From: Marsupella aquatica
Lineage: Eukaryota > Plantae > Marchantiophyta
Direction of reading: 5' to 3'
Assembly (NCBI GenBank): GCA_973895155.1
Contig: OZ316899.1
Location: 2,317,573-2,381,572, forward strand
Length of the DNA stretch: 64,000 bases
Every line of letters begins with the position of its first letter. Within the stretch, counting starts at the first letter, position 1. The notes beneath the pieces were generated by a model, which was given only the letters and a program-made list of their open reading frames with translations, did no database searches and was not told the origin of the DNA. Positions 7,081 through 29,500 of this stretch are shown one piece after another. The position numbers were made by a program, and so were the translations under genes.

Positions 7081-7092
7081 AGGACACCATTT

Positions 7093-7569
7093 ATGAGAGA
7101 TATCAAACGGTGTTGTCATTTATATGTATATAAGCCGTTACTTTTGCAGCATCCTGCAATTGTTTCCTTCTTTCTCCTTCGAATTGATATTTATCTGCTC
7201 ATGTGGGACATCAAAGCTACTATGGATTGTTGGAATTCTTTACCCCGTGCTTTCCAACATTCCTTTGAAGGCAAGATCAAACTGGGAGGACATGCTATTC
7301 AACACTTTGTTATTGATCCAGGCTCTCGAATTAATTTCCTCTCCCACAGACTGTGCCAGCAATTTGTTCATCAAGAAGTACAACCGATATCTGCTCAGAT
7401 ATCAATCGATGGACGAATCATTAATCTTTGGGGAAGAGTTAAAGGAGTCCCAATACAGATCGGAGAAGAATTCCATGACCTCGATTTTTATATTCTGGAT
7501 TCGGATATCTCCCAACTCCCGTCAATGATTTTGAGCACTACTTGGATTATTAAGCCAGAATATTATTAA
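7093..7569 (+). CDS. second, divergent retropepsin-like domain
   Basis: FVIDPGSRINFLS...LDFYILD...MILSTTWI parallels the element's own protease. It is in frame with ORF 4507-7080 across a single TGA (7078-7080). Confidence 0.6.
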   Translation: MRDIKRCCHLYVYKPLLLQHPAIVSFFLLRIDIYLLMWDIKATMDCWNSLPRAFQHSFEGKIKLGGHAIQHFVIDPGSRINFLSHRLCQQFVHQEVQPISAQISIDGRIINLWGRVKGVPIQIGEEFHDLDFYILDSDISQLPSMILSTTWIIKPEYY

Positions 7570-9215: not shown

Positions 9216-12200
9216 CTAAACCTGGTCCCTATGTCTTTGAAAGTGAACAATCCTAAAGTCATTTCTATAGTTTAATCTTAGCCATTCAGTGTTCAGCCAA
9301 TCCCTTGCTCTTAAGTTGCAGTCTGTCATACTTCCTACCCTGAGGGAAACGTCTGCTGACAGCAAACAGGTTGGAAACAGTTTCTGAAAGCACAAGTTTA
9401 AAATCAAAAGCACGCTTATTCAGTTTTTTGAAAACCTGTTCATTCCATGCTAGCCAGAGAGCCCACAATAGCTGATATGTGAGAAATAGTCTAGCAGTGT
9501 GGGTATGTGCTCGTCCGACGGAAGCCTCCAGTAGATCCAAAAGACTGTGTCCATAACTGAACAAAAAGCCCTGTCCCACTTCAAGCCCAAAACTCCAGCA
9601 TGTGGACACAAATGGACAATGAAAGAAAAGGTGGGGGATCATCTCCAGGTGTTCCAAGCAAAAAGAGCAGATCCCCGGGTCCGCCCCGATGGTAAGAGCT
9701 TGAGAGCCCGTGAAGAGACCTCCCACAATTATTCTCCAGATGAAAGTTTTAGCCCTTGTAGAAAGATCAGATCACCATAGATTTGCCCAACATTTCATCC
9801 ATTGTGTCTCTGTGTACTCTGAGCCCCATATCCTGTTCCATCTTTGATAATCAGCCCCTTTTGGCCTCAGCATCTGGTAAATGTGATGATTGGGTATTTT
9901 AAAATACGTTGAAGACCTCTGATCATCAGCCCAACGCCACAATCTCGCACCTGGTTTGTATCCCCAGTCACAGTTGGCTTGGTCCCGTATCTTTTGAAGA
10001 CGGAGCTTGCTGCGGTCCCGGTAAGCCAGGTCAAACCCACGTAGTCTGTGCCACCTTTCTGCTAAAGATCTCCAGGAGTGGGTTGCCTCATCCCACAGGT
10101 CCATAATAGCCTTAATTCCAAGCTCCCCAAGTAGCTCCGTAGTAATTTCCATATGGTCCTGCAACTAGGACTGTACAGCGGAGAGCATCCCCAATGCTCC
10201 AACGACCAGGAAATCCAACAGCCCCGGGGACAAAACATAGATGCGCCCGCAGAGAGACCCAGGCCTTCCATAGGCCACCTGAGTAAGGCATCCCTCCGCC
10301 ATTGCGCAGAGAGCACAAAAGTAACTTGTCTTTGACTGTGTAACCGTTCCTTCTAATCGTTCAAAAATTCTGCCACCCCACCAGATTTAGATTTGCCAAA
10401 AAGAGACAAGTCCATTCTGAAGCCGAGGAGTCAAGAGCTTTCGTGATCCACTGGGTTAATAGCGCCTCTGAATGGCATCTGAAGTCATGAAATCCAAGTC
10501 CCCCTTCCACCTTGGGTCGCGCCATCTTGGCCCACGCAACCAGGGGAGCTTCTTCTTCTGCTCAGTGCCCACAAGGTTGATACCCCACGAGAAATCCCTA
10601 CACAGAGCAATCATCTTTCACTCTAGTTTGTTGGAGGCTTTCATAAACATCACATGGTATATAGGGATTGCAAGCAGCACATGTTTGATGAGCAGTGTTC
10701 TACTAGTAAATGAAAGCATCTTGCTCGACCATGAAGCTAGACGAGAGGCAATTTTATCTAAACAGAAACTATGGATATGCTCCATCTGCAGCCCAATACC
10801 AAAAGGGGCACCAAGGTATTTGAGTACTTCTCCTTCTCTACTTATCTTACATCCTGTTTCCATGAGCCAGGCTGGTACTTCCTTCATAGCCAATGGGACA
10901 ATATTCAATTTGTGCAGATTCAACTTGGCCCCCGAGGCATTCTCGTAGCAACTGAGAGCCACAATGGTGTCTGCAAACCTCCCTGGATCCGTCGGGATAA
11001 ACATGCCAACATCGTCCGCAAAGAGCCTATAACATACTGTCATCCACTCAGAAATTTTAATACCAGTGAGTCTATGTCCAGCCAGCTCGGCATCCAGGAA
11101 ATCCATGAGAGGCTCGGTCAAGATCACAAAAACAAGTGGAGAGAGAGGACATCCTTGTCAAACTCCTCGCCTGAGCTCAATAGCCCTGCTCAGCCTCCCG
11201 TTGACGTAAACCTGGGAAGAAGCATTAGTCAGCAAAGCATGCACCAGCTTGGTGAACCATCCACTGAACCCCAGGAGTCTCATAGTTTCCCACAGATACT
11301 CGTGGTCAACTCTATTGAAGGCTTTCTCAAAATCTAATTTGAGAAAAAGAGTCTCCACCTGCCGACTGTTCACCCATTCTTGTATCAGCCATGCGAGCAA
11401 GATATTTTTGAGTATGTTTCTACCCCGGATGAAGCCAGTTTGCTGAGTGCTAATGAATCGGGGTAGAAGTTTTTTGATTCTTAAAGCCACAATCTTTGCC
11501 AAAATCTTGTATGCCGTGTTCAGCATAGTTAAGGGTCTCCAGTCCTTGAGAAAGTGCTTGTCCGCTTTTATAGGAATGAATTTGATCAAACCATCTTTAG
11601 TCTCTGCTGCCACTTCCCCTGTTAACCAAAAGTAATGTATCATGCTCATGAAATCCGCCTTCATAAAATGCCAGCAGCTTTTGTATACCTCTGCTGTTAA
11701 TCCATCAATTCCGGGAGACTTATCCGAAGGGAGATGTCCAATCACATCCTCTACTTCCTTTAGAGTAGGGAGCGCCTCCATCTGCGTGAGTTCACCAGTT
11801 GTGAATGCGTGCCTTATATTCTTCAGAAGTCTGTCTCTGCCCTACGATTTATGAGCCGTTTTGCCGGTGAGGGGGGAGCGGGAGCATAGAGCTCCATGCA
11901 AAACCGCTCCACTTCTTCCAGTATCTCCTGCCCGTTTGTCACCGTTGTACCCTCCTCCCTTTCTAGGACCCTCATAGCTTCTTGTTCTTGTTTGGCCTTG
12001 ACGGTTGCAAAAAAGAACTTAGTAGATTCCTCCCCCTTGCCCAGCCATTTCACTCTCGCCATTTTCCTACATTGGTATGCTTCTTCAAATTCGGCTGCAT
12101 GTAGCTTGTCTTCTAACAGGAAAAGATCGAGAGCGTCTACCTCAGAGTAGTCCTCTACTATAGTGCTTTAAAGCCCTGACTTCCTCCCTTAGGAAGTGCA

Positions 12201-12260
12201 TCTCTTCAGCTGCTTGTTGTGGAGTAGCTTGTATCTCCATATATTGTTTTCTCAAGCTTT
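9216..12260 (-). pseudogene. decayed L1-like LINE ORF2 (RT plus C-terminal zf-RVT-like region), 5' part lost
   Basis: Fragments carry KSPGIDG, WRPLTMLNTAYKILAK, KLDFEKAF, LFADD, KYLG and CSFC...HLFFHC; several stops and frameshifts. The left boundary is approximate. Confidence 0.92.
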
Positions 12261-12279
12261 TGCTTGCTCTGGAAACTCT

Positions 12280-12767
12280 GGTCCAGGTGTGTTGGGACAA
12301 GCTTTAGGACAAGCTACGCTAATTGGGCTATGAGCATGTCCTAGGGTCAAGGCGGTCAGTTGGTGATGGATAGGTACGAGGGGGAACCCGGGCCGCACCC
12401 AAGGAAGGAGTTGTTCTGGACAAACAATGGGCGTGGGTTCTGGTTTCGGCTTATGGCATCGGGAGGATCTATTGCTGACCTATTTACCAGTGTCTGTTGA
12501 GCTTGAGTTAGGATGCTAGACTTGGCGAGTTCTAGATCCTAAAGGGTTACTTACCAAGGTGCTTGGTTGCTTGTGCAGACAATGAGGACCATGAGTAGCG
12601 ATCATGTTGGAGAGCAAGTGCGGCTTCCTATGGGAGAGGCCGCTGGCGGTGCAAAGGGCACTAGGGTGCTTGCTCAAGGTATTCCGTGGAGGCATTCGGG
12701 CACCAGGGGCACTTAAATAGGCGTGAGTGCTGGGATTGGTGAGGGCGCTGGGTAGCTAGGTCCACCA
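12280..12767 (+). repeat. 5' LTR remnant (3' portion only)
   Basis: Diverged direct repeat of ~30515-30992; ends GGTCCACCA just before the PBS. Confidence 0.85.
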
Positions 12768-12771
12768 CTTG

Positions 12772-12783
12772 TGGTATCAGAGC
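12772..12783 (+). promoter_or_regulatory. primer binding site, tRNA-iMet
   Basis: TGGTATCAGAGC. Confidence 0.92.
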
Positions 12784-13117
12784 GATTGTTGGTATAGACA
12801 CCGGGCCGGGGTTGTGCTAAGTCAGAATCCAAACATCTTAACGGTTTTTTGGGGGGACTTAGTGCTTCAATGTGCCCAGCGGGTTGACTGCGGGCAGATT
12901 CGGTCGTTGGGAACATGGCTAAAACACTCAATCAAAGAGTGGCAAACAGGCTCCCCCCGCCAAGGGGAGAGCCCAAGTTCAAGATGAACAGAAGGAGGAT
13001 GGGTCAACTTCCCTAGACAAACGTTACAAGCAGGATGACAAAGACGTGACGGCCGAACCGTCAACCGCCATGGCAAATACGTCAAGTGCATAGCGTCATT
13101 GACTTAAAGGGAAGGAG

Positions 13118-16061
13118 GTGGCCAATCCTTCAAAGGATGGGTCGGAAAATGACGGCTCCGACACGGATGGAAGGAATGATAATGCTGAAGCTGAATTGGA
13201 GGAAGAGGGTCAGGACCCAGAGGAGGAACTGATCCCAGCCTTGAGAGGGTTGGATGCGGAACCAGAGGATGATGTCAAGCAGGACGTCATTGTGGATAAT
13301 TTGACCAAGCAGAACCAGGGAAATGCGGGTGATGCCTCAGTCCCAAGAGGTCATGGTGCTCGCAAGACACTGGGAGTGTCACCAAAATCCACAACAGAAC
13401 CTCAGGACAGGCGGCCCGCAAAGGAAAGGCGGTTGGATGATCGTCCTCATACAACCCGCAAGGGCCCAACCGCTGATGACGGTTTGGGTCCGTTGACTCA
13501 AGACCAACGACTCATTTATGAGCAATTGGAACACAACAAGGGGGCCCAGATTAAGTACTTACTTAGTCTAGGTAGTCAGAGTGCAACGCGTCTCGAGGGG
13601 GGAATGGTAGTTGGACGGAGTATGTTCCAAGTGAACCAGCTACTGACTCCTCCAACTTACGATGGGGCCTACAAACAAAGTGGACAAAAGTTCTAGAGTT
13701 GGCTCTCCACAATGGAGATTCATCTCCAAGCGTGCATTGAGCGTTCCATTTGGGCTACCACAACCGCTCCTTACCTGAAGGACTATGCCTTGACTTGGTA
13801 CAAGTCATGGAAGAAGTTGCGAGAGGACTCCTCCTTGCCATTAACTTGGGAAAACCTGGTTGAGGGACTCCGTGCTCATGTCACCACTAAGTACCCGCAG
13901 CGGCACGCTTAGAAATGTGTAACGGAGATGAGCTTCAGGGGTTATAACCAAAAGTTCATCACTTATTACCAGAACCAATTGGCGTGTATCTGGGCGGGGC
14001 AAGAGACCCTACGTACACAGCTTCACAACTTTATAGTGAAGCTCCCGTCGTTGCTCAGGGAAAAGTTGCAGGAAAAGCATCACGCGTTCAAAACGCTTTC
14101 TGACGCCTTTGACAAGGCCACTACATTGGTGAATAACCGGCCGGACTTGGCGAAGGTGGGTGGCAAGGGATCCAAGGGGGGAGTTGGGAAAGCTAAAGGT
14201 CCCGGGAATAAGCGTAAGCAACCTGAGGGGGCGAGGGCCGGTGGTTCGGATCCCCAGCCCCAGAATGGAGAAGCTAAGCAAAACCGGAAGGCCAGAAACT
14301 TCAAGAAAGGAATCTCATCGGCGCAGAAAGCAAAGAAATAGGCACTCATGGAGTAGAGGCGGGCTGAAGGTTTGTGCTTCACTTGTGGTGCCATGTGCCA
14401 TCAAAGTAAGGATTGTTCCACAAAAGGTGGCAAGCCAAGCGGAGATGGAGGGTAGAAGAGCATTAAGGTAAGTATCGCTCTAACCAAACCCTTAGTAGCT
14501 GACAAGGTCCTTGTATGGGATGTTCCTGCCAGAGAGAAGGTATTGTTGCAAGAGAAGATACCTAAAGTTAAGACAATGGATCCTGAAAGACTGATTTTGT
14601 GAATGTCACTTCTAACGGTAATCTGGATGTTGCATTGGTGGATACAGGCGCGACCACCTGCTTCATAAGTGGGCAGGCGGCGGCATGTCTTGGGGTGGAT
14701 GTGCAAGAGTTGCTACAACCGTTAGTATGCAAGTTTGCCAATGACACAAAGGGGATAGTGTCGAGAGTGGTACATAGACTTTGAGTAGAGGTCATAGGCG
14801 AACAACAAAATTTTGTTAGTCAGGAGATGTTCTACGTTCTAGACGGTCTAGCCGTAGACTTCATTTTGTCGGTAGGTTATCTCAGAAAGCACAATGTTAC
14901 CTTGAAACTGGGGGATGAAGTGCTCCATTTTCCCAATAAGGGCAATGAGCCCATTGCTGTACACGAAGTTACCAAAAATAAAGAAAGATTTCTCAAAGTA
15001 ACTAAAGTGTCGTGGTTGTCTCCGTGTGTATCGGCGAAGCAATGGTGGAAAGACTTCAAGGGTGGACATGGATGTTTCTTCTTTCATCTCCACCTAGTTA
15101 AGGAGGCTGCTTTGTAGCCAATGGTCAAGTCAGCTAAGGTTAGGCCGGACTGCGGTTGAATTCCTAACATTGTAGAGGAATTCAATGACGTGCTCTCGCA
15201 AAAGCTACCTAAAGGTTTACCCGAGCGGAGAGAAGTGGATCACCAAGTTGAGTTGGAGCCAGGTTTGGCTCCTCAGGCTAAAGCTCCTTATTGTTTGAAC
15301 CTGAACGAGCAAATGATGTTGAAGAACGTCTTGGAAGAGTTGATTGACCAAGGGTTCATTTGTCCTAGTAAGAGTCCTTATGGGGCGCCCGCGCTGTTTG
15401 TGTCCAAAAAGGATGGTACTTTGAGATTGTGCACAGATTATCGGGCCCTCAATAAGCAGACGGTAAAGAACAAGTACCCGTTACCTCATATGGATGACCT
15501 CGTTGATTGCCTCTCGGGGGCTAGGAACTTTTCAAAAGTGGACTTGCGGTCTGGGTAGACGACATCCTAATCTACTTGAAAACGTTGGAGGAACATGAGC
15601 AATTGCTCAGAGAAGTGTTCTCTCACCTTCGTAAGGCTCGTCTTGCTAAACCTAGCAAGTGCGAGTTTGCGATGAACAAGATTCAGTTCCTCAGCCATAC
15701 CTTTACCCCGGAAGGGATTACGCCTAGTCAGGACAAGCTTAAGGAGATCAAAGAATGGGAGCGCCCGTCCAATGTAAGGCAGGTTAGAGCCTTCTTAGGA
15801 TTTACGGGGTTCTATCAGAGATACACGAAAGACTATGTGAGGATTGCAAGGCCCCTAAACCCGCTAACATTGAAAAACAAAGTGTTTGCATGGACACAAG
15901 ATTGCGACTTAGCATTCCTAGAACTTAAGCGGCTAATGATAACGCCGCCGGTTCTAAAGTTACCTGAGATGCGGAAGCCGTTCGAGATTTGGATAGACGC
16001 AAGTGATTATGCCATTGGCGCTTATCTTCACCAAGATGGGCGTCCTGTGGCCTTTGAGTCA
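13118..16061 (+). pseudogene. chromovirus gag-PR-RT-RH (N-part), multiple stops and an RT deletion
   Basis: CCHC knuckle CFTCGAMCHQSKDC (~14377-14418), protease [27 protein letters not shown] runs directly into DDILIY at ~15555, and RNase H WIDASDYAIG...VAFES is cut at 16061. Confidence 0.9.
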
Positions 16062-16913
16062 GGTGGAAAGCATGATTGAGGGGTACCAAAATGTGCAAAA
16101 AGGACTGGGATTCTGGGATGGCAGTCCTTGCAATTCTTGGCACATGAATGGTTGAGATGACAAGGATCTTGAGCCGCCAAGGACGTTTTGAACTCACTTT
16201 GAGACAAAACGTACTTAAGACTTAATAATGACATTGGTGGGGCCAGGACATTATGAGGACTCCAAACGCGCGGAGTTCTCTGCCAATTTGAATCCCTTGA
16301 GAAGAGAAGTGCGGCCAACGCGAGAGTTGTACAGTTGTCCACAAAACTTCCCGCTCACAGAAAGCTTGGGTCGCCCATTTCTCACTTGCACTTGTTTCAC
16401 TTGGGCGGAGCTCTATCCGCCCATTTCTCACTCAAGTTTCACCTGGGTGGAGCTCTATCCACAGAGCGTATGTGGTAATGGGGGTTTGAGCATTGTGGAT
16501 TTGCCAATTGATAGAGGATTGCTGCTTGACGGGTTGTTGATTGCTGCGCATTGGGGGATTGGTCATTGCTGTGGATCGGGGATCGTGGATTGCTGCGCAT
16601 TGGGGGATCATTGATTGCTGGGCATTGGCGGATTGCGAGCTACTTAATTGCGGTGGAGGATTACTGCTTGTTACTAGTTGGTTGCTGCTCGATGGAAACT
16701 ACTCGGTGAGTTGCAAAGCAGACATCAGAGGGGACTTAATTTTGTTATCGTGGCTAGAAGGTATAGCTCAAACTTCAAATTTATGTATATTCCTATATAG
16801 GCTATCGCTCCGTGTAGTTTAGTCCACCCTGTGAGGCGTACCTTTACATATTGTGGGCAGAGGTCTTATTGAGTGTTTAGTCATAGTTTTTTTGTTTATT
16901 CAGGAAGAGTTCG

Positions 16914-17978
16914 ATGGATACCACTTCTCCATTGACAGTTGATGGAGGGGTGGATGTCAAGTCGATACAGCGAGTATCCAATGTCCTGGCGAAAGCTGAG
17001 ACAGGCATCACGAAGGAAAACACCAAAGCTCAACTGCCAAGAGTAGCTAAGAAAGTGAAAGGCCAGAGCTCTGATGTAACTTGGTCTCCGACCGAGTTCT
17101 ACAAGGATGCAGCCTGGTTTGCTACAAACTTTGGTCTCCCCAATGAGGGTGAAACTCCGCACAAGATTTTAGATCTCACCGAGGAATAGTTGAGTGCGTG
17201 CTTTGGTGAGGTAACAAGGAATGGCTATAAGCTAAGTACTTGCACGGGTATTCCTCTTGATGAGATTTTAGCACTGTCTCAAGTGGTGGACGGGTATGAG
17301 AAGCCTGTTAATGGAATTCTATCTCATACGTTTGTCAAAGGTGCCTATGCTGAGCGGGTGCTTCATAGAAAGGTAAATTGGGCAGCTTATGCATCGACAA
17401 AACTGAAGGGTCAGGTAACTCAGTGGTCACGAGATGGGAAAGGTAGGCCTGATGGCCCTCCTTGTGTTAGAAAGCCTCAACTGTATTCAGCTCCAAAGTC
17501 TTCGTCAGAGACTAAACCCGTCGTCTGTGACGGACAGTTAGCACTTTTTGAGAGCCCTAAAAGTGTCGTGCCCAAGGAGCTTGGCAGTTGCAGCTTGACT
17601 AAGGTTAGGACAGTACCTCCTCCCACACCTATTCTATGTGTTTGTCCATCCGAGAAGAGACAGATTCCCTTGAAAGTGAAGAACGTTCTGGTATCTGCCA
17701 TAGAAGTCGAGATATCTAAAATGAGGGGTCAGCTCGTGTCTGTGAACAAGAGGTTCGACAAGGTCCATTCTACCATGGACAAACTGAAGGTAATTCAGTT
17801 GGGACGTGATGATGTGGAGAGCTCATTACAGCAAGAGATTGAGAACCTACGACTTCAAGAAGATAAAATCTCCAACGAAATTGATGCAGAAGAAATTGCA
17901 GTGGAAGAACTAACGATCGACATTGAGTTGGAATCCAACAAGCAGGGTGAAGGAGAGGCGATTGAAGAGGTACTTTGA
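16914..17978 (+). pseudogene. cargo ORF: plant-transposon accessory domain plus coiled coil, one in-frame TAG (17187-17189)
   Basis: FGLPNEG...TRNGYKLSTC...VNWAAYA matches the motif pattern of ORFs at 4507, 32465, 37852 and 57493. Confidence 0.65.
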
Positions 17979-18094
17979 GATTTCCTCCTTCATCTTGCTA
18001 GGATCATGTCCTTTCTCTATTCAGGACCCGTTTGTTTGCGGTTGTGGACTTCAATGTGGGCTTTAGGCGATGGACCTTGTGGCAAGAGATGTGA

Positions 18095-18739
18095 TTGTTT
18101 GAAATGTTGATATTGCAAGTTAACAATGACTTGTTGGCCTTGATGGGGACAACGCTGAGAACTCACGAGAGTACAGTCATCCAGCTTTCTAGCCTTTTGG
18201 AAGCCACCCGACGGGATTTGCATAGTGTGAAGGCAAGATTACAGAGAAAACAAGAGTATGACGAGAGTGTGCCTAAAATGATGTCCCGGATGTTTGACTT
18301 ATCTAACAAGTTAACAGCAAAACGCCGAAAGATTGAATCTAATTTGAAGCATCAGGAAGTAGAGCTTGCGATTGTGGCAGACGTTTTATGCAACCCATGT
18401 CCTGCAGTGATGCCACGTTATACCCTTACGTCCACTGAAACAAGTTTTAGCAGAGTTTCTGTATCAAGTTGTCCAATTTGTTGCAATGGATACCATTGCT
18501 ACAATTGGATCCCAGCATCATGTGGGCACACATATCATCCTGCATGTTTGTTTACTTATATTCATTCATGTACGGGCGGCCCACAATGCAAGGCATGCGG
18601 GGCAATTTTCAGTAATGACTGGTTACAAACCTGGGGTTTAGATGATGAGCAAGGCTACAAAGAGGGCACTCATATAGCCCTAGAGCATCATCCAATGGCC
18701 ATGGAAGTGGAGGACCTATATGGGAAGAACTGTAGGTGA
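18095..18739 (+). CDS. cargo ORF/exon: coiled coil plus RING-H2 zinc finger (E3-ligase-like)
   Basis: C-x2-C-x13-C-x-H-x2-H-x2-C-x13-C-x2-C (CPIC...CGHTYHPAC...CKAC). Confidence 0.82.
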   Translation: MFEMLILQVNNDLLALMGTTLRTHESTVIQLSSLLEATRRDLHSVKARLQRKQEYDESVPKMMSRMFDLSNKLTAKRRKIESNLKHQEVELAIVADVLCNPCPAVMPRYTLTSTETSFSRVSVSSCPICCNGYHCYNWIPASCGHTYHPACLFTYIHSCTGGPQCKACGAIFSNDWLQTWGLDDEQGYKEGTHIALEHHPMAMEVEDLYGKNCR

Positions 18740-18965
18740 TTGGCCCAGAGGCGACAGTTGGTGAACAATATGGTCTCAATCGAAGGAAAGGTATCCACAC
18801 TGATCTGCACTTTAATTGCTAGTTGGCTTTCAATTGATGAATTTGCAATCTTTGGAGATGGATGGGTTACGAATGGATGTTGAGCACTGTTCACTGTGTA
18901 CTGCTTCTTATGGAACATGGTCTGCTGTTGTGGAGCAGGATTTGCAAGAGATTGTTGAGTGATGC

Positions 18966-19340
18966 TTGGCTTCTATAACACCTTCTTCCACGGTTGAGGA
19001 TGCAGCTATTGAGGATTGCGGTGGTGAAGACAGATCATCCAAGATGGTCATGTTGTCACCAAAGGTTGAGGATGAGGATTCAGGGAAAAAACGGAAGTGT
19101 GATGTAGATTCTAGCAGGAAGGTGAAATTAATACCGTTGTTGAGTGCTAAGCCTGGTCAACATGTGCTAACGCCTAGTGCCACTCTCCCATTTTCCCCAA
19201 AGGCAGATGTCACCTTTAAGACATACTCTTCACTGAAGACTCCAAGCCCTTATGGACCGACAATACCTCCACCAAATTGCAATGGTGTAGATGCTAGGCC
19301 AAAGAAGAAGCTTTACAATATGCCTCGGATAACGTTTTAA
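18966..19340 (+). CDS. cargo ORF/exon, low complexity with NLS-like KKRK motifs, function unknown
   Basis: ORF only; it may be a further exon of the RING gene. Confidence 0.3.
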   Translation: MASITPSSTVEDAAIEDCGGEDRSSKMVMLSPKVEDEDSGKKRKCDVDSSRKVKLIPLLSAKPGQHVLTPSATLPFSPKADVTFKTYSSLKTPSPYGPTIPPPNCNGVDARPKKKLYNMPRITF

Positions 19341-19724
19341 GTCGTACATTCTGTGGCTGTTGAAGATGTGGTGTGCATTTTGCAATGCGCATACCGTGAT
19401 TTTCATGCCTTTTGTGTTTAAAACTTCCTCTATGCTCTTTGGCAGCTTCGAAAGACCAGCCGCAAATCATATTTTTGAGCAATTCTCAGTTTCTCACTGG
19501 TAAGTCTTCACTAAACCCTCTATTGGCAAATGTCATGTGCAAATGATGAGGAACCTTTAGCAAAGTCTTGTTGGTAATAGCACAGTCACTCTCTAATCCG
19601 AGTAATCTTAGATGAGGGGTCTGGTCCTTTTTGAAAGGAGTGTACACAGGAGCGAGTCTTGTACAGTCCTTTTACACTTAGTTCATGACTTGTGTCAATT
19701 AAACGAGTTCTGAAATCTGCTCTG

Positions 19725-20350
19725 TCAAGGACTGTGAGCCCTTGTCAACCATTTTTTACCTCTTAGTTGTTCTTCTTTGTTAAGGACTGGGTGGCCTTCG
19801 TGAAGGAGTGGGTGTCAGTTTTCAAGGAGTCCATGTCCATTGTGAAAGGAGTCTGACCCCTTTTCCAAGGAGTCTATTTCCTTTTCCAAGGAGTTCAGGT
19901 CCTTCTGAAGCAAGTGCATGTCCTTGGTCAAGGAGTGTCACTCCTTTGTTAAGGAGTGCATGTCCTTTTTAAAGGACTGATGGTCCTTGACAAAGGAGCA
20001 CTAGTCCTTTGAAAGGACAGTTGGTCCTTGACAAAGGAGCAATAGTCCTTTTGAAAGGACTTTTGGTCCTTGTAAAAGGAGTGTTACTCATTTCCAAAGG
20101 ACTGTTCATTTAGGAGTGTTTGTCCTTTGGAAAGGAGTGCGTGTCCTTCTTAAAGTAGTAGACATCTTCGAAAAAGGAGTTGAACAGGGAGTGCATGTCC
20201 TTAGAGAAGGAGTGATTCTCCTTTTTGAGGAGTGGGTGTGATTCAAGTAATTTCTCCCTTCTGCAAACAAGTCCTTTCCTTGGTCAAGTCCCGGGTCAAG
20301 TAGAGATGTGCTTTGTAGTATCTGGATCTTGACTGTGTCCTTAAGGAGTG
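19725..20350. repeat. array of ~21-bp palindromic units AAGGA(C/G)-N5-(C/G)TCCTT
   Basis: Units start at 19930, 19951, 19972, 19993, 20013, 20034 and 20055, with degenerate copies on both sides. Confidence 0.9.
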
Positions 20351-20354
20351 AACT

Positions 20355-21155
20355 GTGAATGTGCCATTCAGTACTTCCATGATAGCATACGTGCAGCATA
20401 AGATTTTAGCAGTTTCTAAATACTTAGCCTCTCTGTTTGATTTGCTGCAGATGGCCAAGAATGAGAAGTTTGTCACCCTCCATCTGGCCAAGATTGAATC
20501 CATGTGGGGACTTTGTGCTGGCTCTTATGTTTATGAAGGTTGTTCAAACCTGTTGAGTGATGGTAGACCCTGTGCTTTGGGCAAGCACAAGCAAAAATTG
20601 AGAAGGCAAGATGCAAACTCCCCAATGGGACCCCATTCACGAGGCAGAACCACACATGAGTGTTGTGTTGATGGGGCTGGTACACAGATGTACTGCTTTG
20701 CTGTGCAGATTGGCGATGAAGTGATTCAATTTAATGAAGAGAATGGGGAGAAGCTAATGGGTGTGTCTGGTAAAGTTTTTAAGGACGAGCTTGATGGCTA
20801 CCCTGACAAGATCAGGAGTGCATGTACTCAAGTAATGAGTACATTGTGGACTATTACTTATGTGAAAGACAAAGATGCCTGTCGAGCACTTGCTGTGGCT
20901 AGGTCTTTACAGTCAACTAGTGTTATTAAATGTGAGCCTAAAGTAGGACCTAGCCTCCCTGAGCCACATAGTAGTGTACATGTGATCATACCAAAGGAAG
21001 ACAACAATCCTAAGTTTTTGAACTCGCTCAGCCGTAGTGACACTACTCCGGTGAAAGCCCACTTGGGGCCGCTCAGTAGACTTAAGGATGCATGTGTGAA
21101 TTTTGGAGGGGAGCTATTTGAGTCCCTGAAATCTATGAAGATCACCTACGAGTAG
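20355..21155 (+). CDS. cargo ORF resembling the RPA70 C-terminal (Zn-ribbon/OB-fold) domain
   Basis: YVYEGC...C...MYCFAVQIGD...FNEENGEKLMGVSG resembles the RPA1-C pattern Y.AC..C..Y.L...I.D......F.E.AE.LLG.SA. Judged by eye only. Confidence 0.5.
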   Translation: MNVPFSTSMIAYVQHKILAVSKYLASLFDLLQMAKNEKFVTLHLAKIESMWGLCAGSYVYEGCSNLLSDGRPCALGKHKQKLRRQDANSPMGPHSRGRTTHECCVDGAGTQMYCFAVQIGDEVIQFNEENGEKLMGVSGKVFKDELDGYPDKIRSACTQVMSTLWTITYVKDKDACRALAVARSLQSTSVIKCEPKVGPSLPEPHSSVHVIIPKEDNNPKFLNSLSRSDTTPVKAHLGPLSRLKDACVNFGGELFESLKSMKITYE

Positions 21156-22489
21156 TATAGTGAAGTAGTTAGACAAAGTTGGAACCAATTACACTTGGAT
21201 GTTTACTCCAATCTTTGTAAACTAAGACTCAAGAGCAATCATGAATATATTTTGAAGCGCATATATTTTTCCCCACTCAAATGACTTTCCTGTGGGACAT
21301 AAGTACTACCTTTTAGTAGCGGCTATTGAAGTAAGTTAGACAGTTTAACTCCACCTTGGGATGCGCTTGACTTAAAACCTCCACCTTCTAGTATACTGTG
21401 GGACATAGGTTGCATTTTTACTCTTGTAGTGGTAAGTAAATATTCAACTCCATCCCATCCCCGCAGGGCACATATAATGGATGACAACTCCAGCCTCCTT
21501 TCTCAGGGTTGTAGGTTTTGAGTTCTCTTAGGTTGGACTTTTCCAATATGAAATCTCTACTGTACATTGTCCTGCTCTTTCTGGATCTGGAACAGGTAGA
21601 CAATGAGAATACCATTCTTAGAGCTGGGAAGTGGTCCCATTTGGAAGCGCATCAAACTCTTCCTTAGTCCTTATGAACTAGTCAGGGATAGTTGATCCAA
21701 AAACATTTTGGGAAATTGGGAGTCTTGAATGGGAAGGACTGTAGCTATGTTCTAGACAGTAAATACACAAACTCAAACATGAAGTCCAGATGATTGAAAT
21801 TAATACATTCAAGTGATATAGCCAAATAGACACGCCACTTGAGACTTCTCGGTTGAAAACTAAGCTTGACAAGAGATGGGCCAATTAAAATGAACTTTAT
21901 TGTGCACAAGGGATTTATTACAAAACAGGTGCATGTTACTGCACATATATAGTGATTACTAACAAGAGACCTTTACTAAGTAATATTCAATGCTACCTTT
22001 CACTAGTGATATCCAATGCCTGCTTAGCCTTTATTGTATACTAACTGAGGACTATCCACTGATATGGTTTAACCTTCAGTGGATAGTCCTCAGTTAGTAT
22101 ACAATCATATCAGTGGATAGTCCTCAGTTAGTCCACCTTCAGGGAGCTCAAAGTCCTGTGGAACAACAATCCACATAAATATTAGTGACAGAAATAGTCA
22201 AGCTCACGCAGGGAAGAACAGTTCAGCAGATAGACTTTAGCCAACCTACTGTAGCAACTGTAATGTACATATATAAGTAAGACGGATTTTGGTCTTTTTA
22301 GCAAGAAGTACATGGCTATAATATCTCCTAGGGCTCTAACTCTAGACTCAGGAAAACCCTGAGGACAGTTGTTTAGGACATAAGGCCAGACTGGGTACTG
22401 GGAATTCAGGACTAAGGATTGACAAAAGTTTGCTAATTCAGGACTTGGGCCAGAGGACTCATTGAGTAGGGATGGCAGATTGAGGACTC

Positions 22490-22960
22490 AATCAGGGTGG
22501 AGGACTGATGACTCAGGGTAGAGGACTGAGGACTAACGATGGAGGACTGAAGGCTCCGGGAAAAGGACTAAGGACTCAAAATGAAGGACTGAGGATTTGG
22601 GGTAGAGGACTGAGGACTCGGGCACGGGACTGAGGACTAGGGATAAGGACTGAGGACTGAGGGTTTAGGACTGAGGACTAGGGATAAGGACTGAGGACTG
22701 AGGGTTTAGGACTGAGGACTTAGGACTGAGGCAGAGGACTCAGACTGAGGACTCAGGGAAAAGGACTGAGGACTCAGGGAAGAAACCGAGGACTCATGGC
22801 AAAGACTAAGGACTGAAGCCAACGGATTGAGGACTCCGGACGTTCGGACTGAGGACTCTGGACGGAGGAACTGAGGACTAGTGACCGAGGACTAAGGACC
22901 AGCAACTGATAACTGAGGACTAGAGACAAAAGACAAAGGACTTCAAATGGAGAATAGAGG
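22490..22960. repeat. dense degenerate tandem array of AGGACT(G/C/A) units
   Basis: Dozens of GAGGACT copies on the plus strand, just downstream of the transposase stop. Confidence 0.92.
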
Positions 22961-23013
22961 ACTGGTGATGGAGAAAAAATGGTGAACACACCTCAGTATC
23001 CTCCTTCATATTG

Positions 23014-26000
23014 CTAGGAACCCAAGGATGCATATATTGCTGCCAGAGTCTCGGGCTCAACGGTGTACATTCTATATCGTCCCTTTCCTGCCTCACATGG
23101 AGTGAGACCAAATCTAAGGTGAACTACTGTCTCAGCATGGGCATAGCTCACGCCAGCTAGATCGTTCACCACAAATTTGTTATCTCGCCCTGGGACCTGT
23201 TGAAACCACACTGCCCTCAAAGCTAAATCACCCTCGTTAAATTCCTCTCCATACGAGTCCTTGAAACTCTTCTTCACGGTGTGCAAAGTCTGCTCACATT
23301 GAAGAATGTAGAAGTCCACATTCCACTTGTTACCTATCTCAGCCTTCACTGCAAAGAAGTCACCTTGTTGAACCAATTTGGCCAGCAGCCCATCCTCCCA
23401 TTGGTACAGTCCTTCCCCCACTCCCATTTCTTCCACATCAGTTCTCACGTCACTTGGCAGGACTCCTTTCACCATTACGAGCTTAAACTGTCCAGCCCAA
23501 CTTATATTCTCACATTGCAAAGGTTCATCATCTAAGCAATGAGGACAAAAACAACAAAGTTCTCTGACTTGAAGGAGAGTTGATAGGCGGTTACTAAATC
23601 CATCAAAGCAGTGTAAGGATCGGGAACCTAGGATAGGATCACAGTCCCATTTCTTCTTGCGATTGACAGCTCCCATTGGAATCTCCCAAAACAGGCGTCG
23701 AACAAGTTGGATGTCTCCATACTCCTTTTCTTGGCCCATAGCAAATTTGTCCTTGCAGAACAAAACCACATCATGGGCATTCTCCAATCGATGTCCATGG
23801 ATTCCCTTCAGCTGTTCTCTCTCAATCCCTTGCTTTATGTGGCCTCCAAGGGCATCCTAAAAGCACACACCATAGTACTCATCTCAGGAAATGAAACTTG
23901 GATGATGAATGAATATAGAACAACAAATTTACTATAGGGAACTTCAGCTTAAAACACAATCTGGAATGAGCGGATGTACATGTAAAGTAATATTGCAACT
24001 TACAGCGACACCTTTTCCGTGCCCTGAAGCATGGAAATACCACTTCATTCGTGCACCAAATCTTTTGTAGTATCTGGATACATAATAAAAAGGTCTGCAA
24101 GCCTTGAACTGTGAAGCAGCCCCATCTGACCAGACCCAATGTTGCTCAAACTGAATTCCTTCCTCCCTCATCCACTGGTTATGAGCATCCATGCAATGTT
24201 GGACGAAGAGAGTGTCGTGACAATTGTCATCACTGATATAAAAATGATAATGTGCAATAATGTCTCGACCACCCTCCTCATCCAATGCCATCCGAACCGT
24301 ACTTCCAACAGCAGCCTCCAGAGATTCCACACAATCTTCTCTATGCCTATAAGTGACATGAATCAACAAAGTGACCTGTCTATTATCCCAGTGTTGACTT
24401 TGTATCTCATTTTGGATTTTGAACGTGTAATTTTCAGAGAAATCAATAGATGACACTATAGTTCCTCTAGGGAAAGTTTTCAAACAAACTTTGAATTGTT
24501 CTGACTGCCAACGTGCTCTGAAATTATGCACAATGAATGTCTTCATTGTATTCAAAACCTGACTCTTGAATTCACCCATTGAAGTTCTCTTAAACACCAT
24601 TCTCAACCATTTTGACTTTTTTGTAGCACTCTCGTCTGTTCCTTTTTTCTTCTCTCTCTTTTGCTGGGCTTTCTCATCTAACTCCAAATACTGAAATGTC
24701 TCCCACTCAATAAATTGCTTGTCACCTGGATCTAACTCAGATGTACACCAATCCAACTTGTTGACACCACAATTCTTACAGGAACCCATGATACATTTCT
24801 TTCCATGCCACTGCTTCCCCTCAGCTCTTGGACAAAGAGCTCCATCTATCCAGCCCCGTACAGATGTTATTGTTGTTCTAGAAGCTACACAACTCTGCAA
24901 AGGAGCATCAACTGATGTGCAAATGGGGCAATCACAAGAGCAATGCTTACTGTGTTCATGCTTCCTGAATTTGTTGATTGCCTCCTTCAAGAGGTCCATT
25001 TCAACATGTTGCTTACAGCAACAAATGTTTCTGTCTTTCATAGGACGAACGTAGTAAGGCTTCATATACTGAAAAGACCTGAAGCCTATATTAACTCCAT
25101 TCTCGTCTCTGCTGCAAAACTCCTGGAATTTTAGAAAAAACTCCACCTGAAAAAGATGCAAGCCTTGCTTCAAAACATATTCAATCATTGTAAACAAAGA
25201 TGCAGTAGAGTTCAAATTGCTTACTGATGAACATGAAAGCTCCTGTACCCTATTGTAAACCCTATTTGAATGTCATTGATAATGACAAATTAACAAAATC
25301 TAACCTGGGTATCCTCCAGCCAATGCACCCCATGCTCCTCGTACACATTTATACTCAATCTTAGTCTAGCCTTGTCCTTGGCGCAAGGAGAGATTCGAGT
25401 ATTTGATTCCCAAAACTTTTCCACAATTCTTTGGACTTCAGCTGAAATTTTGTCGCTTCTCACTTTCCTTTCCCCCATTGGAAACCTTATCAAACAATCG
25501 GAATCTATGGACTTCCTCCTTCTTGAAGCTTTATATATGATTTGCCGTTTGATACCCAAAGCCCCAGCCACTAAAGTCTGATACCTATTCACTACTGTGG
25601 CCTGGCCTGCCAATGCAACTGTCAAGATCTGCTTTGCACCTAGATGGTCTTTCTGCTTTGCAGTCTTCACTTTTTGCAAGCAATTCTTTAGGTCAGCAAT
25701 TGCAGCAAGTATTGCTACATCTCTCCGACGAGTCCCAAAAACTGCAGGGAGGTACTTCTTCAAGGAAGGATGGAGCATAAACTTAGTGAAAAATAGCTTC
25801 CTTGCAGACAAATTAAATTTGTCCAATCTACTCAGGATGGATGTCACCGCCACAGACACCTGAGACTGAACACTTCGTGTTCTCCTATTGGAATTCAATT
25901 CGTCTTCTAAATCACCAGCAGACCCACATTGCCAAGCCTCTGTGCGTGTATTACCCTTTTTCTTCTAGTATGTTGCTCGCTTCCTTTGAGCATCTCGTGC

Positions 26001-26342
26001 TCTAAATTCTGTTGAAGCAGAGGATTGATAGTTTGCTTGCCTCGAAGCTGAACTCTCCCGCTGCAGCTCTGAAGTTTGGCCATGCATGCTCTCACCGAGA
26101 AGTTGCCCATCTAAGGACCAAAGACGTGCTTCTTGACGCCCTATGCGATTGCAGAGAGTTTGTCTTCTTTGTGTCAATTTGTCACATTGTAATTGTGTAG
26201 ACTGTAGGATGCTAGTAGCTTGTGTACTTGCATTCACTATGATGTCGGCAGCCTCTTGGGAAGCCTCCGCACGAATTCTACTCGCTTCATTCTCAGCAGA
26301 TGAAATCATTTGCTGGCATTTGTTTCGCGCATCTTCCAACAA
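23014..26342 (-). pseudogene. spliced DDE transposase, Sola2-like; introns 25147-25304 and 23857-24003; one premature TAG at 25965-25967
   Basis: Motifs IDFSENY..EIQSQHW..QVTL and WSDGAASQFK. GT-AG splicing joins WLEDTQ|VEFFLKF and HGKGVA|DALGGHIK in frame. The C-terminal part has GSRSLH...RELCCFCPHC. Confidence 0.8.
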
Positions 26343-27295
26343 ACCCTATCCAGCCACATCGTTACTATTACCACCATGTGCAATCGATTGTCCATCGGTG
26401 ATCCGTTGCTGCCTATTACAATAGGACTTGCGTCTGCTAAGGTTTCGCCTTTCTGATCTCTCTCTTGCTAGGGCATCGTGGACTTCAGCAAGACTGGCCA
26501 TCCGATGTCAGGCACCGCATCAAGTACTAGACAAAACTTGGGAGGTATTGAGCGGGATGCGGAGCATCTGAGCATTCAGATTCTACCTGATACTAGGCCA
26601 ATACTTCTAAACTTGCCTACCCATTTGATCCTGTGAGCACCATGGCAAAGCTCAACAATCGCCCAAGGTCCACCAACGCTTCAATCACAGTGCTCCTCCT
26701 ATGGGCAATCTCCGAGATGCATTGTTGTAAATCAAACGTCCACGATGAATCATCAACTCCCGATCCAAAGCTTCAACTATCCAACTATGCCCCATCCCCA
26801 ACAACTCAGCTCTCACATTGCGTGTGTATGGCGCAAGCTCCTTCGATGAGTAATCGACCACCATAGCCATCCCTAACCCCTAAGCCCTTCGCTGTTGGTG
26901 CGTGCCCGTCCCAAGACAATTCAAGCCACTTGTGCTTAGAACAAAATCCGCGATCAATTTCAAACATCGACTATGAGTCCTTGTATTCAAACACACTGCG
27001 AGCCGCAACTTGCTCTATTCAATGTCACGGGATCCAAGGAGAACATTTATACGTCGTCCTTGCTAAAGTCCAAGATAGGAATTACGCATCTAGACTGTAC
27101 TTCAACCGGTCCAAATGAATACTTAATGCATTTTTGATTGATATTCAAATCCAGTCTTTGATTTGGTCCTTCTACATCTTGGCCCTTGAGTGTAACACCC
27201 CCCAATTTATTGCAAAAATCATGAGGACTCACTCCTTTTGGTGGAGACTTTGGAGATCCTTTTTATGTACCCCTCAATCATGCTTTCCACCGTCA

Positions 27296-29088
27296 TGTAA
27301 GTTGGAAAATCATTGGATCACACTTGAAAGGGAAATGTATGTTGTGATCTATGCGTTGAAGAAGTGGGAGATTTACCTTAAGAACGGTCCCAAAGTGGTA
27401 ATCCACACAGATAGCTTGCCCGTCGGGTACTTCAATTCTAAGCCAAGGCTGAACCCCAAGGAAATGCGCTGGCAGATGTTCTTGGCGGATTTTGATTTTG
27501 AACTCCGTCACGTTCCTGGGAAGACAAACACGGCAGCTAATGCGTTATTGCGTAAGGACCATCATCGTGTCAATGGGATCCCGATGCTCGAATCCGAATG
27601 GCCAAAGGTTCTGGCTGCGGCGTATGGGGATGACAGGTTAGCTAAGGAATTGCAACGCAATGGGGGTAGCCAAGGCAAGGTAAGGCACGTGTCATTGCGA
27701 TTGGATCCGACGCATAATGTTCAGTTATGGCGATACAAGCAGAGGCGTGTGTACATACCAGAGTCTCTAAGGTTAGAGGTTCTGCAAAAGTACCACAACT
27801 CGCCTTGGGGAGGGCATGGAGGACAAGCTGCTACGTCTTGCAGCATGTCGCGAGATATGTATTGACCGGACATGAAGCAATCGGTCCTTTGCCAAGTGCA
27901 AAGTTGTTACTTGTGCCAAAAGAACCAAAAGGTCTATAGGGCAAAAGGAGGACTTCTGCAACCCTTATGGGTAGCTGCGGCTCCATGGGAGTTTATCTCC
28001 ATGGACTTCATTGTTGGGTTACTTGAGTCCCACGGTAGTAACTCCATCTTAACAATTGTGGATCGTTTTTCCAAGATGGCGTATTTCTTGCCTACTATGA
28101 AAATGATTTCGGCCCGAGAGGTTGCCGGTCTAGTATTTGACAATGTCTTCCGACAATGGGGATTGTCATTGCATATCCTATCCGATCGCAATACCAAGTT
28201 CACGGGCCATTTTTGGAAGGCGTTGTTCCGATTCTCTGGAATGGACCTGACTAGGGGATCAGCGTATTATCATGAGACGGATGGCCAAATGGAATGGGTG
28301 AATGGTATTGTGGAGGACTACTTGCGTCATTTTGTGACGGCCAATCAAAAGGATTGGGCAAAGCACTTAACAATGGCCAAGTTTAGGTATTACTTGACAA
28401 GCATTTGGCAACAAAGTTTGTGCCATTTGTGTTGGCCACAGGGAGGATGCCAAGGGTGCCCTCTTGGTTTATAAATCCGGAAGCTTGGTGGACGGAAAGC
28501 AAGGTTTCTTCTGTAGACGATTTTATTTGAGAGGGGCGCCTAGTTGTGGAAGCGGCTACCAAGGGTATGACCCTTGCCCAAAGTCGGTACAAGGAGCAAG
28601 GGGATAAATATTGATGCTAGGTAAGCTTTGAAATTGGGGAGAGCGTCTGGTTGCAATTGAGACCTGAACAATACCACGGGAACATAAGTAGGAAGCTGGC
28701 TCCCAGATATGCAGGGCCCTATTGTATCATATGATGGGCCCACAAGAATAATCCGGTTTTGATGGTGTTGGAGACACCCAAGGAAATGGGCGTGGGCAAA
28801 AGCTACCATGTTAGCCGGCTCAAGAAGTTTGTCAAAGACAATGATCCCAACCGGGATCAGGTCTTGCGTTCGGACGCCATGATGGTGGAGGACGCTGAGG
28901 AGTCTGAGGTGGAGGCAATTATGGACCATCGTTACAAACACAAGTTGGGAAGGCAAATCTTAGAGTATTTGGTGAAGTGGGCTGGCTATGATCAGGCCGA
29001 GAGTACTTGGGAACCAAAAGAAAATTTGGGTAATGCCTCAAAGATCCTTGGAAGCTATTGTAAGCAAAGCGGCCTACCGCCGTTGTGA
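27296..29088 (+). pseudogene. chromovirus RH (C-part), integrase and chromodomain
   Basis: EREMYVVIYALKKW..HTD, HNSPWGGH..CYLC, ISMDFIVGL, LSDR, and chromodomain VEAIMDHR...YLVKWAGYDQAESTWEPKENL; stops and frameshifts present. Confidence 0.92.
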
Positions 29089-29500
29089 CCTGGTATAGGC
29101 TTTGTGAGTTGTATCCTAGTTTCACTCCTCTCGGCCTCTTAAGGATATAGTCGGATTGCATTGGTGCTAGAGGTTGTTGGGCGGCCAATTTGTTTTTTTC
29201 GAGTGGAAGTAGATGGTGCCCGCCTTACATCTGTGGGCAGGCTGGTTCAAACCAAAGGGGAATACCCTAAGGTGAGAACAATGGGTCCTACGAGTTTGGA
29301 GTTAGCTTACCCGATTGGACTAGCATCCTACTTGGATAAGTGGGATAGGTTGGAATTTCCTAAGTCTGGAATGCGCATACCAACCTGGTTTGCATCAGCC
29401 TTATGAGCAAACCATTTGTTACCTCCTAAAATTTTGAAGGCCCAAGGTGGTCTAGGCATGTTGGAACGTTTACTGAGGTCACGCGGACGTGACCATTTTT

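Follow-up and report, generated by a model that had tools for sequence, protein, structure and literature searches.

The Sola superfamily of DNA transposons, reportedly described by Bao et al. in 2009, is to our knowledge among the least studied of the transposon superfamilies, and we know of neither a solved structure nor a functional assay for it. Two of its members from Dictyostelium and Polysphondylium, Sola2_DFa-2 and Sola2_PPa-1, were classed as Sola2 by Bao and Jurka (PMC3627910), where a 4-bp target site duplication (TSD) is named as a hallmark of the group, and dictyostelids are known to harbor large Sola2 elements with several genes, Fanzor included (PMC3627910). Here, we describe a cut-and-paste-type DNA transposon of about 11.2 kb, located at positions 16062-27291 of a 64-kb stretch of contig OZ316899.1 from the liverwort Marsupella aquatica (the whole 64,000 nucleotides are hereafter called the window), where it is nested in a retrotransposon. 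With a probability of about 0.8, we regard this element as one copy of a high-copy, three-gene family of Sola2 transposons in liverworts, the genes being a spliced transposase on the minus strand and two partner genes, A and B, on the plus strand.

As Sola2 references we used the Sola2_DFa-2 and Sola2_PPa-1 transposases printed in additional file 3 of PMC3627910. The published Sola2 blocks, namely, K-N-R-T-x-x-C, DFKEN, (F/L)S-x-V-L-N-H-C, W(S/C)D(G/N)A-x-HFK, and YHGKS-x-x-D, are colinear, and in Sola2_DFa-2 the third of them is followed by ..V-I-H (PMC3627910). In the alignment of the transposase family, these blocks correspond to invariant or nearly invariant residues and their order is kept; the colinear blocks shared by the liverwort family and dictyostelid Sola2 can be written DFxEN, SD..H...V.H, WSDGA..FK, and HGK...D. 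Of the three conserved, putatively catalytic aspartates, the first and second are separated by 87 residues in Sola2_DFa-2, 91 in the transposase family alignment, and 106 in the window transposase, while the second and third are separated by 43, 42, and 41 residues, respectively. What a sequence-only reading of this DNA had offered as an unverified resemblance to Sola2 is now a match in motifs and spacing to two published Sola2 transposases.

The features expected of a Sola2 element were found together: a 4-bp TSD at three insertions (GTCA in the window, AGTT and AAAC at loci L001 and L005 of the liverwort Calypogeia fissa), bounding terminal inverted repeats (TIRs; 25 bp and perfect in the window, homologous in the Calypogeia copies), and the blocks of a DDD transposase, the last identified by motif comparison rather than by E-value. 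Pfam scans of all open reading frames (ORFs) of the element and of 20 homologues returned no family above threshold. Since the same is reported for Sola transposases, which according to the literature have no Pfam model, the lack of a match in the transposase family is consistent with Sola2. Sequence searches of the PDB with the element proteins, both as single sequences and as profiles, gave either nothing or coiled-coil matches only. A profile search with the transposase collected 12,835 cluster representatives at E ≤ 1e-3, and its named relatives came from Calypogeia, a nemertean, sea urchins, and a scallop; bivalves are known hosts of Sola2. Judged by these comparisons, the transposase likely belongs to the Sola2 group of the Sola superfamily.

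The limits of the element are sharply defined. The window contains the 25-mer GGTGGAAAGCATGATTGAGGGGTAC at two sites only, 16062-16086 (+) and 27267-27291 (-), which form perfect inverted repeats, with no match in shuffled sequence and none expected by chance. When extended to 30 nucleotides, the left TIR (16062-16091, +) and the right TIR (27262-27291, -) are 93% identical, and their outermost bases are GGTGG. One copy of GTCA adjoins the left end (16058-16061) and a matching copy adjoins the right end (27292-27295), and in silico deletion of the element together with one GTCA restores an uninterrupted host reading frame (..VAFESCKLENHW..). The Pfam profile RT_RNaseH is split by the insertion, positions 2 to 37 being matched in the left flank and positions 44 to 105 in the right flank, where Integrase_H2C2, rve, and then a Chromo domain (28759-29088) follow. 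This domain set (an RNase H, an integrase with its zinc-binding domain and rve core, and a chromodomain) marks the host as a Ty3/gypsy element of the chromodomain type (chromovirus), and the insertion lies precisely within its RNase H. The sequence-only reading was therefore correct on all three counts: the perfect 25-bp TIRs starting with GGTGG, which are the sole such pair in the window, the 4-bp TSD, and the precise insertion into a chromovirus RNase H, the last borne out by the split profile match and the restored frame. The ORFs of the host retrotransposon (12000-16061 and 27292-29100) are fragmented into several pieces, and it is therefore an old copy.

Homologues of the transposase together cover the minus strand from about 26477 down to 23014. 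The spliced gene starts with the ATG at 26501 and comprises 1,060 codons in three exons separated by two GT..AG introns, with both splice junctions in phase. Exon 1 (25305-26501, -) encodes an N-terminal coiled coil and a helix-turn-helix-like region. It is followed by intron 1 (25147-25304, -; GTTAGA..CAG, 158 nucleotides), which has a counterpart at the same place in the transposase gene of metagenome contig L006. Exon 2 (24004-25146, -) encodes a Cys-rich region, the first aspartate (DFSENY), the second aspartate (WSDGAASQFK), and, at its 3' end, HGKGVA. Beyond intron 2 (23857-24003, -; GTAAGT..TAG, 147 nucleotides), exon 3 (23014-23856, -) encodes the third aspartate (DALGG) and a C-terminal domain that is possibly BAH-like in the family model. 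Splicing of intron 2 joins HGKGVA to DALGGHIK, and this stretch is unbroken in metagenomic homologues that do not have the intron. The spliced transposase proposed earlier, with two GT-AG introns and the motifs DFSENY, SDG..QFK, and HGKG..D..GG..K, was thus recovered with all of its motifs and with in-phase junctions.

The window copy also carries defects that are absent from the sequence-only reading. Exon 1 of the transposase contains two in-frame TAG codons, at 26348-26346 (codon 52) and at 25967-25965 (codon 179). The second of these corresponds to Trp in contigs from sequencing runs X1, X2, and X4 (three of the four runs compared) and in the Calypogeia protein, and we therefore interpret it as a private mutation of the window copy. 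A further TAG lies in exon A of gene A (17187-17189), at a position that is Met in the Calypogeia copy. As these three stops interrupt the transposase twice and protein A once, the window copy is probably non-autonomous.

Calypogeia fissa harbors three full-length copies, at loci L001, L003, and L005, whose gene order and orientation are those of the window, and in all four of these full-length copies genes A and B lie opposite to and convergent with the transposase. The element proteins of the window and of Calypogeia share 35 to 50% amino acid identity, and similarity at the DNA level is limited to the coding parts, the termini, and the internal arrays. The copies at L001 9302-20127 (TSD AGTT) and L005 5607-17065 (TSD AAAC) have homologous TIRs, and the full unit bounded by such TIRs and 4-bp TSDs measures 10.8 to 11.5 kb in the window, L001, and L005. 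The sequence-only reading had asked whether other copies might show a different TSD length or lack the opposite-strand genes; the L001 and L005 duplications are likewise 4 bp long, and the Calypogeia copies carry the same opposite-strand genes. At L001 (9302-20301), the insertion site of the AGTT-flanked copy lies in a second member of the family, about 170 bp from that member's end, which is likewise followed by AGTT. Another Calypogeia locus (L004 6022-19232) contains copies with genes A and B and no transposase in the locus; these are probably deletion derivatives.

Beyond Calypogeia, a Riccia locus (L002) shows a partial layout, with the transposase and a gene B homologue downstream of it; protein A was not found in this locus, which ends too early. 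Metagenome contigs whose transposases are about 40% identical encode homologues of protein A on the opposite strand, which shows protein A to be an old partner of this transposase clade. In one of these contigs (L006), a gene for a NIF/FCP1-like phosphatase (5602-7152, -), unlike the liverwort gene B, lies between the transposase and the protein A homologue. Words nearly identical to window positions 22900-26650 were seen in ten sequencing runs (X1 to X10), which represent three organisms plus air metagenomes. The Logan contigs of these runs are short, and their word depth is very high. Both features are what a family of high copy number and many variants should give, and they point to such a family.

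Gene A consists of exon A (16914-17946, +), which encodes a conserved N-terminal domain (CFGE..RNGYKL..VNWAAYA) and the start of a coiled coil, and exon B (18120-18739, +), which encodes coiled coil and a RING-H2 finger. The intron placed between them (17947-18119) is of the GT..AG type and consistent in phase, giving a joined model of 550 codons. Metagenome contigs L006 and L007 encode protein A homologues in a single ORF with the N-domain, the coiled coil, and the RING in the same arrangement, which supports the joined model. The RING-H2 spacing, C-x2-C-x13-C-x-H-x2-H-x2-C-x13-C-x2-C, was matched by a regular expression at 18470-18598, corresponding to residues 462 to 504 of the joined model, and the C3H2C3 pattern is kept in L001, L007, and the Calypogeia gene model P0258, with a spacing variant in L006. 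We had considered the stop at 18737-18739 as a nonsense mutation and rejected this, the single-ORF homologues ending at a similar distance past the RING. For the N-domain, profile, PDB, and ESM Atlas searches gave no known relatives, the Atlas scores of 0.6 to 0.7 amounting to no lead. Farther along lies another conserved coding stretch (18966-19340, +), which contains a KKRK motif and represents either a small ORF of its own or, as in P0258, the third exon of gene A.

Gene B (20451-21155, +) is intact and encodes 234 amino acids, with a predicted OB fold of the RPA70 DBD-C type and conserved Cys and His residues. Among 5.8 billion proteins, its homologues were all linked to elements (four from Calypogeia and four unnamed JGI/Logan proteins), two of those from JGI lying on 5,530-bp contigs, and the ratio of nonsynonymous to synonymous substitution rates (dN/dS) between copies is about 0.19 to 0.36. 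Residues 37 to 186 of the structural model align with RPA70 DBD-C at Z scores of 10 to 11.2 and root mean square deviations of 2.3 to 3.0 Å over 108 to 122 residues; the matches include RPA70 of human, Ustilago, and yeast, OB-C of Teb1, and archaeal RPA, and the top Foldseek matches agree. No Pfam family (e.g., Rep_fac-A_C) and, with a profile, no PDB sequence was matched, and ESM Atlas scores of 0.6 to 0.7 gave no lead. The model thus suggests that protein B shares the RPA fold without sequence-level membership in the RPA family.

Gene models of liverworts are affected by these ORFs. In P0258, protein A is joined to the latter half of gene B, an arrangement that would disrupt the OB fold, and an 819-amino-acid Riccia model (L002 21522-23286) overlaps the gene B homologue and may be a similar fusion; both are probably misannotated transposable element genes called as host genes. 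Such ORFs, called as liverwort host genes and in some cases fused, should be masked as transposable element genes.

The noncoding arrays of the element also recur. An array of the short, palindrome-forming motif AAGGA[CG]T / A[CG]TCCTT occupies 19500-20300, just upstream of gene B, and a second array of the motif (22500-23000) separates the 3' end of gene B from that of the transposase. The density of AAGGA[CG]T in the element is about 7-fold that of the remaining window, and arrays are found at equivalent positions in Calypogeia loci L001, L003, L004, and L005, while the metagenomic relatives carry short palindromic arrays of their own (TGGTAGCTACCA in L006 and TCAAGGAA in L007). A palindromic structure of about 100 nucleotides with perfect 30-nucleotide inverted repeats (22033-22132) lies between the convergent genes.

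An AlphaFold model of the transposase family had a predicted local distance difference test score (pLDDT) of 79. In this model, D212, D303, and D345 are placed on an RNase H-like core at the usual sites of catalytic residues, and the core aligns with retroviral integrases, IstA, and Mos1 at Z scores of 8 to 9. The C terminus of the family model (P0019 residues ~455 to 617, about 160 residues, homologous to window positions 23014-23500 on the minus strand) is beta-rich and aligns with at least seven BAH proteins, among them EBS, DNMT1 BAH1, ORC1, AIPP3, MTA1, and polybromo, at Z scores of 5.9 to 6.3, which is a middling range, and it has no Pfam BAH match; for the BAH domain of polybromo, the Foldseek probability was 0.92 to 0.95. 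A BAH-like C-terminal domain is therefore possible, as a lead rather than a finding; a chromatin reader on a cut-and-paste transposase, if true, would suggest targeted insertion.

Several observations weigh against the Sola2 reading or against parts of it. The link to Sola2 consists of motif order and spacing read from the supplement of PMC3627910 and is not a statistical alignment to Repbase or Dfam. The ends differ from those of dictyostelid Sola2, the window element having GGTGG termini and 25-bp TIRs where the dictyostelid elements have TIRs of 12 to 22 bp, and the TSDs of the liverwort family (GTCA, AGTT, and AAAC) contrast with their AT-rich AWWT duplications. TIRs were sought and not found for the L003 copy and the Riccia copy (L002). 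The transposase introns are supported by comparison and by one NCBI gene model, and the contigs of the sequencing runs keep the introns and have no spliced joints, the runs looking like DNA. As to the partner proteins, Pfam RING models match the protein A stretch only below threshold (E values of 0.0015 to 0.2), and the model of protein B has a pLDDT of 49 overall, reaching about 70 to 80 in part of the barrel.

The unlike termini and TSD composition are also what would be expected if the transposase belonged to a separate DDD/DDE superfamily, either nameless or related to Zator and ISAzo13, that resembles Sola2 in short motifs only. This alternative is further favored by protein-language-model and shape searches, which placed the transposase near clusters of DUF7869 and, more weakly, near bacterial ISAzo13 (PF07592; transposase 36), a family linked to Zator. 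The element transposase and ISAzo13 have an RNase H-like core of the DDE type in common, and the similarity in shape is weak, with template modeling scores of 0.47 to 0.49 by the hit. In direct Pfam scans, however, no protein of the transposase family reached PF25273 or PF07592, so that the DUF7869 and ISAzo13 leads from the Atlas received no confirmation from hidden Markov models. Zator elements have 3-bp TSDs, against 4 bp in all three insertions here. Six colinear motifs and a spacing of 41 to 43 residues between the second and third aspartates, in turn, match published Sola2. We therefore retain a separate superfamily as a weak rival and consider it unlikely.

Even with a Sola2 transposase, the plus-strand ORFs could be captured host genes, that is, Pack-type cargo without a part in transposition. 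Capture of foreign genes, Fanzor1 among them, is on record for Sola2 elements (PMC3627910), one metagenome relative (L006) carries the unrelated NIF-type phosphatase gene, and RING and OB folds are common among host domains. Passengers would not be expected, however, to keep a constant order and orientation in the window and all full-length Calypogeia copies despite 35 to 50% identity, to evolve under a dN/dS below 0.4 (gene B), to have homologues that are all element-linked among billions of proteins (gene B), or to recur beside distant transposases (protein A), and we give this explanation even less weight than a separate superfamily. The least probable alternative, which we consider very unlikely, is that two unrelated elements, one nested in the other, make up the 11 kb, with the TIR pair belonging to just one of them. 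It could draw on the internal arrays and the palindromic structure between the gene blocks, as well as on the nesting known in the family at L001; against it, no internal pair of TIRs or TSDs was found in the window element, and the whole 10.8- to 11.5-kb unit recurs with homologous TIRs and 4-bp TSDs in L001 and L005.

We thus prefer a single Sola2 element and, because order and orientation are conserved at 35 to 50% identity and gene B is under purifying selection, judge genes A and B to be partners of the transposase: as far as sequence comparison can tell, they are conserved, element-encoded accessory genes and not captured passengers. The sequence-only reading had described about 5 kb of opposite-strand cargo; the accessory domain, the RING-H2, and the RPA-like OB fold that it listed are all there, whereas the term cargo does not fit a conserved gene set.

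In the mechanism that we propose, the transposase would bind the inverted GGTGG.. ends, excise the element, and reinsert it with target cuts staggered by 4 bp, which would give rise to the 4-bp duplications. Proteins A and B are predicted to be cofactors of transposition, protein B probably binding single-stranded DNA at excision or repair intermediates and protein A probably acting as a dimeric scaffold or E3 ligase, and the AAGGA[CG]T arrays are probably protein-binding or regulatory sites. The window copy would be unable to supply its own transposase and protein A and would depend on intact copies for any movement. A bolder extension, which we hold to be rather doubtful, is that a deep Sola2 clade in liverworts and other eukaryotes needs a dimeric, E3-like RING-H2 protein, together with, in liverworts, an RPA-like binder of single-stranded DNA, and that its transposase carries a BAH-like histone reader that steers insertion to particular chromatin, for example, to repeat-rich heterochromatin. 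The window copy lies within a chromovirus, and one Calypogeia copy lies within another member of its family. If true, such a clade would amount to chromatin-targeted cut-and-paste transposons that bring ubiquitin and single-stranded DNA cofactors of their own.

For fern genomes, RepeatMasker-style tallies of Sola elements already exist. Our literature search, which had Repbase outside its scope, found no description of Sola in bryophytes, including liverworts and Marchantia, nor of the three-gene architecture. The suggestion in the sequence-only reading of a cargo-bearing lineage little described in land plants therefore holds with regard to bryophytes and has to be narrowed by the fern tallies and by the multi-gene Sola2 elements on record; what is new is the liverwort host and the three-gene architecture, whereas Sola2 itself and large Sola2 elements with extra genes were already known. 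The replicated architecture of a transposase, two partner genes, and motif arrays provides a concrete system in which to ask what Sola2 transposition needs, and standard biochemical assays can be applied to the RING-H2/coiled-coil protein, to the RPA70C-like OB protein, and to the possible BAH-like domain.

Compared with dictyostelid Sola2, the liverwort element has the 4-bp TSD, the bounding TIRs, the lack of a Pfam model, a nearly identical spacing of the aspartates, a large size (10 to 15 kb in this group), and the possibility of extra genes in common. It differs in the identity of these genes, the dictyostelid elements carrying Fanzor1 and the liverwort element carrying a RING/coiled-coil protein and an RPA70C-like OB protein, as well as in the N-terminal coiled-coil/helix-turn-helix extension of its transposase, the two introns, and the liverwort host. 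The conserved Cys and His residues of protein B are predicted to sit at the place of the zinc ribbon in OB folds of the RPA70 DBD-C type (RPA70, OB-C of Teb1, and the C-terminal OB of CTC1), although protein B, unlike RPA70, is a single protein of about 230 amino acids without the other RPA domains. RPA-like genes are also carried by plant Helitrons, but protein B belongs to a cut-and-paste element and not to a rolling-circle one.

Plant DNA transposons with obligatory second proteins include En/Spm (TnpA and TnpD), PIF/Harbinger (ORF1 and the transposase), and MuDR (mudrA and mudrB). The liverwort element resembles them in having a conserved partner beside the transposase and internal or subterminal arrays as candidate binding sites. 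It departs from them in belonging to another transposase superfamily and in encoding, as its predicted partners, a RING-H2 protein and an RPA-type OB protein in place of Myb-like or TnpA-type proteins.

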